Below are positions 58,099 to 61,326 of a DNA stretch of 64,000 bases, piece after piece. The notes beneath the pieces were generated by a model. It did no database searches. It was not told the origin of the DNA and saw only the letters and a list, made by a program, of their open reading frames with translations. Every line of letters starts with the position of its first letter. Positions within the stretch are counted from its first letter, which is position 1. The stretch lies in the sequence record NC_022096.1; one strand, 5' to 3'. Both the position numbers and the translations under genes were made by a program.

Positions 58099-58227
58099 CA
58101 GCCGAAGTCGAAAATGCTAATTGACTAAGCACTGAAAAGTGTAAACAAAGTTCACTGGTCACTGCGAGTGCGTCGGAAGTCCCCCGACATTCAACCGATG
58201 CCCACACTCCTCGCAGTGATCCTTTTT

Positions 58228-58303
58228 GCCGGTATAGCTCAGCTGGTAGAGCAACTGACTTGTAATCAGTAGGTCTCGGGTTCGATCCCTGATGCCGGCA
58301 CCA
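58228..58303 (+). tRNA. tRNA-Thr(UGU)
   Basis: 76-nt cloverleaf, ACTGA-CTTGTAA-TCAGT anticodon arm, GGTTCGATCC, encoded CCA. Confidence 0.95.
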
Positions 58304-58325
58304 TATTCTCTGGAGATACACGAAC

Positions 58326-58799
58326 ATGCCGCAAGTTTCTGCGCCAGAAGGCGATGCGCTACTCGACCTCGCCAACATGCCTGATCCTGCCATCGACGAT
58401 GCGTTCGATCTTCACCTGATCGAGGCGAATGACGGCGTATGTCGTGCGGTCGCGCCGATCTTCAAGTCCCTGCAACTGGCGCTGTCCGATATGAGTTACA
58501 CGGACAACGGTGCGCAGTACAAGGAAGAAACTGGACATCGCGGTGCGCTGACGCTGGAGTTCTTCAACAACGTCGGTGGTCAGCAGTGGATCGACGGTTG
58601 CGACGCGCTCATCGCCGAACTCGATGCCGTTGTATTCCACGTGTACCATGCCAACGGCGAGCTGTACAGCGAACTCCGCTTCTCTGGCTTGACCGAGCCG
58701 GAGTTCACCCGCGAGTTCTCGCACAGCGATCCGACAGTGCAGGTCCTGCAGTACGTCTGGCTGTTTGCCGACGTCAAGGAAACTGTGAAAGAGCAGTAA
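58326..58799 (+). CDS. hypothetical protein
   Basis: 157-aa ORF with GGAG SD. Confidence 0.7.
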   Translation: MPQVSAPEGDALLDLANMPDPAIDDAFDLHLIEANDGVCRAVAPIFKSLQLALSDMSYTDNGAQYKEETGHRGALTLEFFNNVGGQQWIDGCDALIAELDAVVFHVYHANGELYSELRFSGLTEPEFTREFSHSDPTVQVLQYVWLFADVKETVKEQ

Positions 58800-58805
58800 A
58801 GAACA

Positions 58806-59045
58806 TCCGACCGCCGATTGCGTGCTCGTCCCACGTGATCGACGGTTTTGGCAGCGACTCCGCTAAGCTGCCGACCAGATGGGTGTGCGGAAGGGTTCGG
58901 CGGAGGTAGCAACTTCGCCGTCGATTGGCCAGTGCAGCGCGTCCTCAGCGTACTCGTCCTACGCAGTCCTCAGCGCTGTACCGCCGTTAGCGTTTACCAA
59001 GCGCCTGCCGAATGCCTGCTCGTCCCAGGATTGGCTGGCCAAAAG
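58806..59045 (+). ncRNA. candidate ncRNA with three CUCGUCC-loop hairpins
   Basis: Identical loops at 58825-31, 58953-59 and 59019-25 on different stems; G-U pairs favour the plus strand. Confidence 0.65.
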
Positions 59046-59111
59046 ACGCAAAGCCCTGCTCGACTTTCCGGTGGAGTAGTAACCGGCTCGATTACTTGAA
59101 GGAGAACAGGC

Positions 59112-59348
59112 ATGTTCCTTTCGCTTTGCCTTGGGCTTGCTCTGGTGTGCGTTGAGCCGACTGCTCCGCCTACACGACCAGATGTCGTGTACTACCAGAC
59201 AGAGACCCGCATGGTTGCTGTTCGGGAATACACCGAACCAAAAGAAGTCGCCGCACTTCCGGAACAGAGTGGCGGTGCGCCCTATCCACGATCAGCGCCT
59301 AACGACCGCGGTCGTGAAGGCCACCGATGTACCATCGGGGTTGCCTAG
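59112..59348 (+). CDS. small protein with hydrophobic N-terminus
   Basis: GGAG SD; MFLSLCLGLALVC. Confidence 0.5.
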   Translation: MFLSLCLGLALVCVEPTAPPTRPDVVYYQTETRMVAVREYTEPKEVAALPEQSGGAPYPRSAPNDRGREGHRCTIGVA

Positions 59349-59564
59349 CTGTCCGGAGCTTCCGCGATCCCGCCCCAAACCGAAACACCACATCGCTAGG
59401 CTTAACGGCCAACAAAATCGCTGAGAGCGAATGAAGTGCGCGAGAAATCGTAGGCACTAAGAAAGGGCAAGGCGGCACGTTAGAGAACAAGGCAAGAGGC
59501 TGACTCGCTGGATTTAGCGACCAGATGCGCCGGGAAACAAACCTCTGCCGCCTGCCAACCTAAA

Positions 59565-59641
59565 GCGGACTGATGAGTGGTTCAAGTCCACATGGCGAAA
59601 GCCTCGGGTGAAAGGCCCACGAAACTCAAACGAGTATCCGC
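59565..59641 (+). ncRNA. type I hammerhead ribozyme
   Basis: Stem I GCGGA/TCCGC, core CTGATGA, stem II GTGG/CCAC, GAAA, stem III CTC-aaac-GAG, GUA cleavage triplet (predicted cut after 59636). Confidence 0.85.
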
Positions 59642-59916
59642 ATGAACGCCGCTCCTGGATGAGCGGTGGGTTCAAGTACACCGACCCACTAATCGGGTCG
59701 TTTCTCGGAGCTGCTTCTGCTGAGATTTCTGTGCGTAGTGAGAAGCCATAGGAGCCTTCGGATACCTGGTCGGCTCATGCCGATAGCGCTTTTTCATCGG
59801 CGCTATCGTACAGGGTTATGGTGGTCATGTGAAACACAAGCACATGCACGCTGCACTCGTTCCCGCCCGCGAGTTCCACCATGCCTGCGGTGAAAGCCAC
59901 AGGTGCAGCCTATTTA

Positions 59917-60081
59917 TGCCATCACGCTCGGCAACGTGCTGAGAAGAAAGAAACGATAAGGCGAGTCTACATACGCCGATCGGCCGCATAGCAGCCCATT
60001 GTGGCAGCCGCATAGTGCCGATTGCCGTTGCGACCAAGCACTTGGACACAAACGCTTCTTGAGTCGTCGAGCGTGATGGCA
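59917..60081 (+). ncRNA. candidate long-stem structured RNA
   Basis: 14-bp perfect closing stem TGCCATCACGCTCG/CGAGCGTGATGGCA, inner stems GAGAAG/CTTCTT and CGATCGGC/GCCGATTG around a central bubble. Confidence 0.5.
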
Positions 60082-60105
60082 CCCTATTGAACAGAGGTAA
60101 CACGT

Positions 60106-60288
60106 ATGTGTATTTGCCGCCGTGCATGGTTCCTGATTGTCGTCAGCGCATTGTACCTGTTGGGTTGCGTTGTCGCATGGTCCATGGGTTGTCTGAATGT
60201 TTACGTCAACCCGGCACAGCTGGTATACGTTGCCGTTCTCTCTGTTCCGCTGTGGTGCAAGTCAGTAGGACGTTTGCTTCACATGTGA
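60106..60288 (+). CDS. small two-TM membrane protein
   Basis: GAGGT SD; two hydrophobic segments. Confidence 0.6.
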   Translation: MCICRRAWFLIVVSALYLLGCVVAWSMGCLNVYVNPAQLVYVAVLSVPLWCKSVGRLLHM

Positions 60289-60294
60289 GTCTGT

Positions 60295-60388
60295 GACCCA
60301 GTAGCTCAGTTGGTAGAGCGCGTGAACGCCTGCGCCGATAGCGGGAGTAACGTCATAGAGGTCGAGAGTTCAAATCTCTCCTGGGTCT
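60295..60388 (+). ncRNA. tRNA-like RNA with expanded anticodon arm
   Basis: Acceptor GACCCAG/CTGGGTC, D arm GCTC-agttggta-GAGC, T arm GAGAG-ttcaaat-CTCTC; 27-nt insert in place of the 7-nt anticodon loop; no CCA. Confidence 0.75.
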
Positions 60389-60405
60389 GCCTATTTCTGT
60401 AAAGG

Positions 60406-60615
60406 ATGTACACGATGTTGCCGTCAATGCACTTTCCACTAAAGCGTCCTGTGCTTACTCCAGAAGAAGCCAGTGCGTCGCGTGCCAGAACCCTTGAGGC
60501 TATTCGCAAATGCCGCGAAGCCCAAGCTGAACTGGAGCGAGTTTGCCGTGAGAAAGGCATTGAGATTCCGGTGATGGTCTGTCGTTCTAGTTTCCGAGTT
60601 CGTTCGGGTCGTTAG
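60406..60615 (+). CDS. hypothetical protein
   Basis: 69-aa ORF between the tRNA-like RNA and tRNA-Lys; end overlaps the tRNA 5' end. Confidence 0.5.
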   Translation: MYTMLPSMHFPLKRPVLTPEEASASRARTLEAIRKCREAQAELERVCREKGIEIPVMVCRSSFRVRSGR

Positions 60616-60681
60616 CTCAGTTGGTAGAGCATGGCGCTTTTAACGCCGTGGTCGTTGGTTCGAGTCCAACACGACCCACCA
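60606..60681 (+). tRNA. tRNA-Lys(UUU), copy 1
   Basis: 76 nt, TGGCG-CTTTTAA-CGCCG anticodon arm, CCA. Confidence 0.93.
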
Positions 60682-60689
60682 GTTTCATA

Positions 60690-60765
60690 GGCCCCATAGT
60701 CGAGCGGTTAAGACGCTTGCCTGTCACGCAAGAAATCGCGGGTTCGATTCCCGCTGGGGTCGCCA
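60690..60765 (+). tRNA. tRNA-Asp(GUC)
   Basis: 76 nt, CTTGC-CTGTCAC-GCAAG anticodon arm, CCA. Confidence 0.95.
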
Positions 60766-60766
60766 T

Positions 60767-60843
60767 AGGACGTTAGCTCAGTTGGTTAGAGCATCTGACT
60801 TTTAATCAGAGGGTCCTGGGTTCGAGTCCCAGACGTCCTACCA
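60767..60843 (+). tRNA. tRNA-Lys(UUU), copy 2
   Basis: 77 nt, TCTGA-CTTTTAA-TCAGA anticodon arm, CCA. Confidence 0.95.
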
Positions 60844-61128
60844 TATAAATGCCGCCGCCCACATTCTAGCTTGGTCGCCTGATTAGGCGGAGGCAACGCA
60901 GCAGCTTGTTCAGTTTCGTCACGGCTTCTGAACTACCTTGCAGCCAAGAGCGGGAAGAGCGCTCACCTATCCTGGCCTGTAGTCCGGAACACTCGGGCTC
61001 GACGGTGCACTCCTCGACAAGTGCGCTGTGACTGTGATTAGACTGACCGGTGTCGAGAGGATCGCCAGTGGCCGGTATATCTTCAGGGAGTGGAAGGAAA
61101 AACTCCCTTAGCCTTTTTGGAGATTGTG

Positions 61129-61326
61129 ATGCTTGCCCAATTGTTGAAGACGGCACGTAGAAAGTGGTACGACTTCTGGGATTACCAGATCGTTCGCGTT
61201 TGGCACCAAGACAGCCCTGGTGTTCGTGTGTACGTCAGTCGAAATTGGTTGCAGCGCATGATCTACAGCAAGGAGTTCTCTCACGTTGGTGAGAGGCACC
61301 TTGAACAGAATCAACCTGCCAGTTGA
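61129..61326 (+). CDS. hypothetical protein
   Basis: GGAG SD, start MLAQL. Confidence 0.6.
   Translation: MLAQLLKTARRKWYDFWDYQIVRVWHQDSPGVRVYVSRNWLQRMIYSKEFSHVGERHLEQNQPAS

Follow-up and report, generated by a model that had tools for sequence, protein, structure and literature searches.

A conserved structured RNA with a putative variant type-I hammerhead in a predicted tRNA-containing operon of Pseudomonas phage PaBG

Transfer RNAs (tRNAs) and tRNA-like elements can act as punctuation of polycistronic transcripts, as illustrated by tRNA punctuation in mitochondria and by the mascRNA of MALAT1. In tailed phages, theta ribozymes, which are minimal ribozymes resembling that of hepatitis delta virus (HDV), adjoin tRNAs, and a role in processing polycistronic RNA without host nucleases has been proposed for them (bioRxiv 10.1101/2023.06.13.544163). 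Large RNAs such as GOLLD, ROOL and OLE form homo-oligomers (PMC12286853). Here, we analysed a stretch of 64,000 nucleotides (nt) of NC_022096.1, named the window hereafter, which matches Pseudomonas phage PaBG with 100% identity (NC_022096, Baikalvirus, 258 kb; genome position = window position + 62000). Within it, we focused on positions 58100-61130, which contain a hammerhead-like motif and which an earlier note had described as a 3-kb non-coding RNA island. The GenBank annotation of this region consists of two hypothetical proteins and five tRNAs and is empty from the end of gp317 (58326-58799) to a 'tRNA-Ala' at 60295, and the five tRNAs are its sole mention in the PaBG genome paper (PMC7412058). 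In the papers searched, we found no description of RNAs of the PaBG S1/S2/S4 type (the structured segments defined below) or of such a hammerhead, nor a PaBG transcriptome.

We hold with moderate confidence that this region belongs to a plus-strand operon combining mRNAs and tRNAs with structured RNAs, in which a variant type-I hammerhead lodged in a fold of ~440 nt would cut between positions 59636 and 59637. The putative operon would interleave five protein genes (gp317, orf78, orf60, orf65 and gp316) with four tRNAs, a tRNA-like RNA and three plus-strand segments, S1 (58803-59110), S2 (59349-60090) and S4 (60845-61089). S2 would be an RNA fold of ~440-750 nt common to PaBG-like jumbo phages, with the hammerhead embedded in it. 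In this hammerhead, stem II would be swapped for a T-loop hairpin and a hairpin with a UGAAAGG loop, with or without a variable third hairpin, and the two conserved loops would probably dock onto each other like the T and D loops in the tRNA elbow.

The hammerhead module covers 59565-59641 on the plus strand. From 5' to 3', the first strand of stem I (GCGGA, 59565-69) is followed by the core strand CUGAUGA (59570-76), a T-loop hairpin (GUGG-UUCAAGU-CCAC, 59577-91), the linker AU, a GAAA hairpin (GGC-GAAA-GCC, 59594-603), the linker UC, a UGAAAGG hairpin (GGG-UGAAAGG-CCC, ~59605-19), an A, the C-GAAA strand (59620-24, with GAAA at 59621-24), stem III (59624-35) with CUC-AAAC-GAG and a U at 59635, A17 at 59636 and the second strand of stem I (UCCGC, 59637-41; 5 base pairs, bp). 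The predicted cut falls between A17 and this last strand. All the invariant hammerhead nucleotides are present (C3 to A9, G12 to A14, the A15.1-U16.1 pair and A17), and the minimum-free-energy fold of 59565-59641 is the hammerhead junction, with 41% of the ensemble. The hammerhead claimed by the earlier note is thereby recovered as a motif, and we assign it to type I because its 5-bp stem I is open to both sides. The place of stem II is taken by a 4-bp hairpin with a T-loop (UUCAAGU or UUCGAGU) right after A9, by an optional variable hairpin of 0-48 nt and by a 4-bp hairpin with the loop UGAAAGG, which is followed by an invariant C before G12. A single stem II helix, with 10.1-11.1 abutting A9 and G12, was found in one lineage only (L034, see below); in PaBG, position 10.1 pairs within the T-loop hairpin and two or three hairpins stand between A9 and G12. 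The PaBG element is therefore filed as a variant and not as a canonical member, and we read it as probably a hammerhead variant with a predicted cleavage.

PaBG has no close relative among GenBank phages or in IMG/VR, where searches with gp317 and gp163 matched PaBG alone; PaBG was also the sole match in IMG/VR for a conserved 38-mer pattern of S1. Comparisons started from the Logan assemblies, in which a gp317 homologue (P0002, 65% identity) gave access to a relative phage, named Rel (loci L004, L005 and L006, identical across their overlaps), whose DNA is ~77-79% identical to that of PaBG over the whole region. With the downstream DUF1353 protein gp315 as query, many PaBG-like phages were obtained, three of which (L030, L034 and L037) retain the local order from the Tad2-like gene to DUF1353; the gp315 relatives L031-33, L035 and L036 are not syntenic and do not carry the module. 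DNA pattern scans brought up a fourth syntenic lineage (L012, L014, L015 and L018), whose contigs reach 266 kb; it displays homologues of gp160-163 and gp317 upstream, and tRNAs as well as gp315 and gp312 homologues downstream. The order gp160-163, gp317, RNA, DUF1353 and gp312 is found in L018, L030 and L037. At the DNA level, nhmmer alignments extended from S1 through S2 in L037 (expectation value, E, of 2e-101) and, in L018, over the hammerhead and the 3' part of S2 (E 7e-14).

The hammerhead-type motif also recurs in other large phages. Two DNA pattern scans specifying opposite halves of the motif each recovered the other half in large viral contigs, and a structural pattern added members from metagenomes and from one Paraburkholderia genome. 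A covariance model (R1) built on five lineages found one copy in the window and the new members L030 and L037, which lay beyond what the patterns were able to match. Among the remaining pattern matches, L009, L010 and L011 were rejected as tRNA or coding sequence, and L016, L017, L020, L022, L023, L025-27 and L029 for their misfit to R1. L011 is an unrelated viral contig with a permuted transfer-messenger RNA (tmRNA; 10-391, 85 bits) followed by 20 tRNA genes (1541-9945).

Across lineages, the stems vary while the core is kept. Stem I reads GCGGA/UCCGC, GCGAA/UUCGC, CGCA/UGCG, CGCAU/AUGCG, UCGCA/UGCGA, GCUCU/AGAGC or CACC/GGUG, the second of these being the version of Rel, which is compensatory with respect to PaBG. 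Eight lineages have A, C or U at position 17, and the core strand is CUGAUGA in PaBG, Rel, L018, L030, L037 and L024, and CUGACGA in L021 and L034. In the five-lineage alignment, double changes affect 11 of 16 pairs, including all five of stem I and one of the three of stem III, and both hairpin stems covary too; 95% of the cells are paired, versus 25-50% when the partners are slid. The canonical closure (stem III-UH-stem I) arises in 0.7-4% of shuffled downstream sequences, depending on the lineage. Finally, RNAalifold returned stems I and III and the hairpins unprompted, from three as well as from four sequences.

At the syntenic site of L034, a PaBG-like phage from a compost metagenome, a minimal textbook type-I hammerhead is found at 713-758 (UCGCA-CUGACGA-GGAG-UUAAU-CUCC-GAAA-CCC-UAUU-GGG-U-C/UGCGA, the slash marking the predicted cut). 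The S2 sequence downstream of this site is visibly homologous to that of L018, and the stem I sequence is identical in both. Rfam models align the L034 element end to end with the RAGATH-1-hammerhead and HH9 cores, at 12-14 bits versus thresholds of 52-56. At the Rfam thresholds, such short phage hammerheads go undetected. Since current Rfam models miss hammerheads of the PaBG kind, these are probably under-counted in phage genomes.

The module follows a stop codon at a distance of up to ~10 nt in L013, L021 and L030, and ~350-650 nt of sequence poor in open reading frames (ORFs) extend 3' of it in L013, L030 and L007 (the L021 contig is too short). In L028 (5491-5616; Paraburkholderia sp. BCC1886, a bacterial contig) and in L007 (a 172-kb viral contig), the module is present without canonical closure, with a coding sequence before it and ~650 nt of ORF-poor sequence after it.

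How the two conserved loops might touch was considered as well. A long-range stem II (GUGG/CCAC, 59577-80 with 59617-20) was rejected because it is not conserved in L018 or L024, and a kissing loop UUCA/UGAA because it is uncompensated in L030 and L037; an elbow-like contact equivalent to tRNA pairs 55-18 and 56-19 is preferred. In L030 (4773-4848) and L037 (6128-6205), the T-loop UGCAAGU is accompanied by a second loop UGGAAAG or UGAAAAG. There, a U to G change at position 2 of the T-loop goes along with a G to A change at position 6 of the second loop, and the adjacent C and G are kept. Such loop changes are what an elbow-like contact would predict, since the changed pair would correspond to tRNA 55-18 and the kept pair to 56-19. 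As these two lineages are possibly related, their loops are only suggestive of an elbow contact.

The module lies in a much larger conserved structure. Substitutions between PaBG and Rel are flat over codon positions in all three segments (counted over 58800-59111 for S1 and 59349-60105 for S2), S2 has no codon signal and all three hold insertions or deletions that are not multiples of three. Their conservation is at or above that of the flanking genes, with identities to Rel of 82-93% in S2 and 87-98% in S4 (60845-60960) against ~75-80% in genes. In an independent structure test, PaBG was folded alone and the Rel substitutions were then mapped onto this fold. For the plus strand, compensatory changes account for 13 of the 58 pairs affected in S1 and for 12 of 52 in S2, while four coding controls gave 1-4 compensatory pairs out of 73-100 affected ones; these shares (22-23% versus 1-5%) amount to a 5-10x enrichment. 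The minus strand fits worse in the same test, with more pairs broken. Both the multi-stem domains and the plus-strand preference asserted by the earlier note thus gain from the relatives, and the compensatory changes it had named as a check were found. With RNAalifold, compensatory changes affect 15 of 76 pairs of S1 in a two-sequence alignment and 28 of 79 in a three-sequence one; for S2, the counts are 12 of 219, 32 of 153 and 25 of 79 with two, three and four sequences, respectively. Sliding the 3' partners lowers the 12 compensatory pairs of the two-sequence S2 alignment to 0-3.

The S2 core fold (~59387-59825, ~440 nt) is closed by long-range helices (59387-91/59821-25 and 59519-34/59803-17), both with double changes among PaBG, Rel and the L018 lineage, which enclose the hammerhead and ~200 nt on each side of it. 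Because the ribozyme would sit within a closed ~440-nt domain, a cut would yield a two-piece RNA able to stay assembled. Just 3' of the module, domain 2 (59651-59711, plus strand) is a three-way junction, as read from its sequence, with the layout GCUCC / UGGAUGAG / T-loop-like hairpin / second hairpin / GGAGC closing stem. A GAAA core strand is missing from this domain, which is conserved with compensatory changes in relatives and looks paralogous to the hammerhead module. A long hairpin (59917-32 to 60066-81) marks the 3' part of S2. In S1, a three-way junction occupies the 5' part (58803-58886), with one pair being G-C, A-U and C-G in three phages, and is followed by a conserved central hairpin region (58939-76) and by a hairpin at 59068-86. 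S4 has a homologue in L037 and a hairpin at ~61002-61029 with three compensatory pairs; its structural support is weaker than that of S1 and S2.

Besides tRNA, no Rfam family was found at gathering score over the whole window, nor at E<=10 in 57900-61500 or 59540-59720. The earlier note had asked whether known families would account for the segments, and tRNA alone was matched. The hammerhead, GOLLD, ROOL, tmRNA, RNase P and riboswitch models all remained unmatched in these scans; the parallel that the note had drawn with GOLLD and ROOL therefore finds no echo in their family models. Sub-threshold matches (Plastid-ycf2, YrlA, bxd_4 and others) were discarded as tRNA antisense or noise. In the same way, tmRNA, RNase P and group I/II introns were rejected as candidates, with no model match and a wrong order of motifs.

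Whether the segments are released as RNAs of their own or act where they stand has to be weighed. Some of them may be leaders, since they lie directly upstream of small ORFs: S1, S2c and S4 would then be cis-acting (riboswitch, thermosensor or attenuator-like) elements for orf78, orf60 and gp316, respectively, and not released non-coding RNAs. We regard this as a credible possibility, short of an even chance. Each structured block runs right up to the ribosome-binding site of a small conserved ORF, and a predicted helix at the 3' end of S1 (59012-18/59107-13) can cover the start codon of orf78. Moreover, S4 stays with gp316 and not with the tRNAs in Rel, despite the insertion of a 102-amino-acid (aa) ORF between them. 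Conversely, phages of the L018 type retain S2 without any detectable homologue of orf78, orf60 or orf65, the S2 core of ~440 nt closed by long-range helices is far above the size of known leaders and known riboswitch models are unmatched. The leader reading is compatible with an active hammerhead. Of the several new released RNAs envisaged by the earlier note, what stands is that S1, S2 and S4 are conserved and unmatched in Rfam; their release is less firm, as some may be cis-acting leaders.

Several observations weigh against the operon model with its cleaving hammerhead. Stem II is non-canonical: no direct junction connects the hairpin that follows A9 to G12, and we came across no structural precedent for such an arrangement. 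PaBG matches no Rfam hammerhead model at E<=10, including in a 181-nt search, which is weak counter-evidence given that the textbook hammerhead of L034 itself reaches only 12-14 bits. Most scan patterns required CUGANGA and GAAA, and the lineages of the alignment were picked for canonical closure, so that the conservation of the core is partly by construction; one scan without CUGANGA still recovered the core strand. The canonical stem III-UH-stem I closure is absent in L013, L019 and L007/L028 despite the same T-loop/UGAAAGG module; the module may thus be a structural junction that cleaves in some cases only. The S1 and S2 alignments rest on only three or four independent sequences. Windows of 120 nt give modest folding-energy z-scores, the best on the plus strand being -3.3 (at 58780) and -3.5 (at 59560), so that thermodynamics alone proves little. 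Finally, S2 and the hammerhead are present in L037 and L030 without a downstream tRNA cluster. This weakens a tRNA-specific role and undoes the tie to tRNA arrays made in the earlier note; the link between structured RNA and tRNAs is one of neighbourhood and not of mechanism.

Taken further, the first of these points lead to a reading that we consider unlikely, in which CUGAUGA, the T-loop hairpin, the UGAAAGG hairpin and CGAAAC form a structural junction, for instance a tRNA-elbow mimic organising or docking the RNA, which does not self-cleave in PaBG. The unmatched hammerhead models, the unusual stem II and the lineages that retain the module without a canonically closed cleavage site would all suit such a junction, as would its enclosure by long-range helices, expected of an internal domain, and the paralogous junction without GAAA just 3' of it (59651-59711). 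A purely structural junction would, however, not need the core nucleotides, and eight lineages retain the catalytic core, the A15.1-U16.1 pair and a position 17 other than G while their stems I and III vary. The plain minimal hammerhead of L034 at the same site argues in the same direction.

We see little chance that S2 is the functional counterpart of GOLLD or ROOL, namely an RNA-only multimer in which the hammerhead would serve for maturation only. The resemblance lies in size, phage origin, proximity to tRNA genes and the many conserved helices with GNRA or T-loop motifs in S2; it stops at the sequence, which has no similarity to the Rfam GOLLD and ROOL models at E<=10, at the loose association with tRNAs and at multimerisation, which is only hypothetical for S2. 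The idea of chance folds in non-coding blocks that would be neutral spacer sequence or genes in decay, to which modest z-scores and few relatives might lend some colour, is effectively refuted by blocks better conserved than the flanking genes, by the 5-10 fold, strand-specific enrichment of compensatory changes over coding controls, by the alignments to L037 and L018 and by the occurrence of the hammerhead module in unrelated contigs.

The region is also a coding one. A codon-usage model trained on the long ORFs of the window gives gp317 (58326-58799, plus strand, 157 aa) a coding score of 0.42, like neighbouring genes; together with its third-position bias and its homologue P0002, gp317 is clearly coding, at odds with the earlier note's view that only short ORFs occur up to 61.1 kb. 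From 58800 to ~61100, the same model finds a coding signal in no frame. Substitutions relative to Rel were counted at first, second and third codon positions. They amount to 34/30/69 in gp317, 20/12/29 in orf78 (59112-59348), 9/6/23 in orf60 (60106-60288), 6/6/26 in orf65 (60415-60615) and 17/8/29 in gp316 (61090-61326), compared with 31/15/82 in gp163 (57448-58098), all on the plus strand. As judged from these third-position-biased substitutions and from the reading frames, which are kept in Rel, the island holds five protein genes (gp317, orf78, orf60, orf65 and gp316), three of which are absent from the GenBank annotation. This leaves ~1.3-1.4 kb of non-coding sequence split over three blocks (S1, S2 and S4) instead of the 3 kb first proposed.

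The three unannotated ORFs have no match in Pfam or PHROGs. The N-terminus of orf78 resembles a signal peptide or lipoprotein, AAGGAG stands 8 nt 5' of its ATG and its frame and stop codon are retained in Rel despite a 6-nt insertion or deletion. An ORF of L034 (326-583) looks similar to it by eye (REY and C-IG motifs in common). Small, hydrophobic and membrane-like, orf60 is conserved in Rel and L037 and was called as a gene in Logan contigs, and orf65 is conserved in Rel. For gp316, coding-type substitutions begin at 61090 and its start is probably the GTG at that position and not the annotated 61129. On the left flank, gp163 has a coding score of 0.46 and a C-terminal Tad2-like domain (residues 129-211, PF11195, E 2.8e-12, 47.4 bits versus a cut-off of 25).

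The four canonical tRNAs announced by the earlier note are all present on the plus strand and score 69-76 bits in Rfam, ARAGORN concurring: tRNA-Thr(UGU) at 58228-58303 (70.4 bits), tRNA-Lys(UUU) at 60606-60681, tRNA-Asp(GUC) at 60690-60765 and tRNA-Lys(UUU) at 60767-60843. The tRNA content of the island turns over fast. The tRNA-Thr anticodon is CGU in relatives versus UGU in PaBG, Rel has no counterpart of the first tRNA-Lys and a 457-nt insertion with the 102-aa ORF follows its last tRNA-Lys (L004 11411-11867, between window positions 60843 and 60845). The cluster's first tRNA, which is a tRNA-Lys in PaBG but a tRNA-Asp in Rel, contains the final codons and stop of orf65 (60606-60615; L004 11252-11274). 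Because of this overlap, RNase P cleavage would leave a non-stop orf65 mRNA. In PaBG, Rel, L018, L013, L024, L030 and L034, tRNAs occur within ~1.1 kb of the RNA, on the same strand.

A fifth element, the tRNA-like RNA of the earlier note, is found by ARAGORN and Rfam over 94 nt at 60295-60388 on the plus strand, 7 nt after the stop of orf60. Its acceptor, D and T arms fit the tRNA model (48.9 bits), with a 36-nt insert in place of the 15-nt anticodon arm, and comparison with Rel reveals six compensatory pairs in the acceptor and T stems. In contrast to these stems, the D arm and the central arm of ~34-38 nt are identical in PaBG and Rel, apart from a 1-nt deletion in the central loop (7 nt in PaBG, 6 nt in Rel). 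A 5-bp anticodon stem with a 7-nt anticodon loop, as in a cloverleaf, is lacking, and ARAGORN reports Ala(UGC) for the PaBG element but '???' and a 4-base anticodon for that of Rel. The element is not present in L018 and L037. It almost certainly does not decode, which makes the GenBank label 'tRNA-Ala' doubtful, and the invariance of its long central arm suggests an additional, sequence-specific role.

Every feature of the region is on the plus strand. An intrinsic terminator at 61374-61397 (plus strand, 10-bp GC-rich stem followed by a T run) is likely the end of the transcription unit, which may span from another intrinsic terminator (54161-54197) and the repeat-rich 54.2-55.6 kb. A single polycistronic unit would fit with such a layout, given the common strand and the bounding by a terminator-plus-repeat region and by a strong terminator. 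The polycistronic unit of the earlier note is thus supported by this layout, with tRNAs, a tRNA-like element, a hammerhead-type module and at least three conserved structured segments unmatched in Rfam, and has to be amended in that it is not purely non-coding. The left terminator opens a second gap without genes (54152-55630, ~1.5 kb), which is unannotated in GenBank and uncalled in Rel. It contains direct repeats, namely TTTGACTACTGATTGCAGTA twice (54538 and 54656), GCGAAGGACC twice and GCTGGCGCTCA three times (55371, 55449 and 55504). Between 54840 and 55630, identity to Rel is 82-100% with flat substitutions over codon positions, and no Rfam family was matched at E<=10 in 54100-55650. This gap is probably a promoter/operator region or another RNA.

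In the operon model that we favour, self-cleavage would most likely occur between A59636 and U59637. The upstream product would consist of S1, orf78, the 5' half of S2 and the ribozyme, with a 2',3'-cyclic phosphate end, and the downstream product would start with a 5'-OH and carry the 3' half of S2, orf60, the tRNA-like RNA, orf65 and the tRNAs. The long-range helices could keep the halves of S2 joined after cleavage, and host RNase P and 3' processing enzymes would make further cuts at the tRNAs and at the tRNA-like element. A bolder extension, which we consider doubtful, is that S2 represents a new class of large phage RNA (~0.45-0.75 kb), self-cut by an elbow-mimic hammerhead, with the T-loop docked on a UGAAAGG loop resembling a D-loop, into two pieces that long-range helices would keep joined, and forms with the invariant-arm tRNA-like RNA, the extra Lys, Asp and Thr tRNAs and the Tad2-like gene a part of an RNA-based module for counter-defence or tRNA homeostasis in PaBG-like jumbo phages. 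If true, the model would add a structurally new hammerhead, with a four- or five-way junction and a tRNA-elbow-like module replacing stem II, and a testable instance of ribozyme-plus-tRNA punctuation in a phage operon beside an anti-defence gene. Besides, this work defines previously unannotated conserved RNAs (S1, S2, S4 and the non-decoding tRNA-like RNA) and three small proteins, and bears on the role of large tRNA-adjacent phage RNAs. As PaBG is cultivable and infects PAO1, a laboratory strain, genetics and biochemistry are feasible.

Compared with known systems, PaBG shares with tRNA punctuation the placement of tRNAs and of a non-decoding tRNA-like element directly between cistrons. With 7 nt between the end of orf60 and the tRNA-like RNA, and with orf65 entering tRNA-Lys, RNase P and 3' processing would separate the mRNAs. 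It differs in the invariant long central arm of the tRNA-like element. GOLLD and ROOL (RF01998, RF03087), as large multi-helix phage non-coding RNAs that are often near tRNA genes, are the closest in kind to S2; S2 nevertheless matches them neither in sequence nor in structure, belongs to Pseudomonas-type jumbo phages and has an internal ribozyme-like module. Theta ribozymes are the closest biological precedent, being a small self-cleaving type in tRNA-rich phage regions. They are of a different class and lie within ~1 nt of a tRNA 3' end, whereas PaBG-type modules are 0.07-1.1 kb away from the nearest tRNA in lineages with one close by, and some relatives have no nearby downstream tRNA; the predicted cut of PaBG would release a large structured RNA or an mRNA. 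For the module itself (59565-59641), the closest known entity is the type-I hammerhead (CL00010; RF00163, and RF03152, RAGATH-1-hammerhead). PaBG departs from it by the two or three hairpins standing for stem II, by the invariant C before G12, by its embedding in a much larger conserved fold and by the fact that no Rfam model scores it, and it is alike in the core strands, the A15.1-U16.1 pair, the non-G at position 17, the covarying stems I and III and the open end at stem I.

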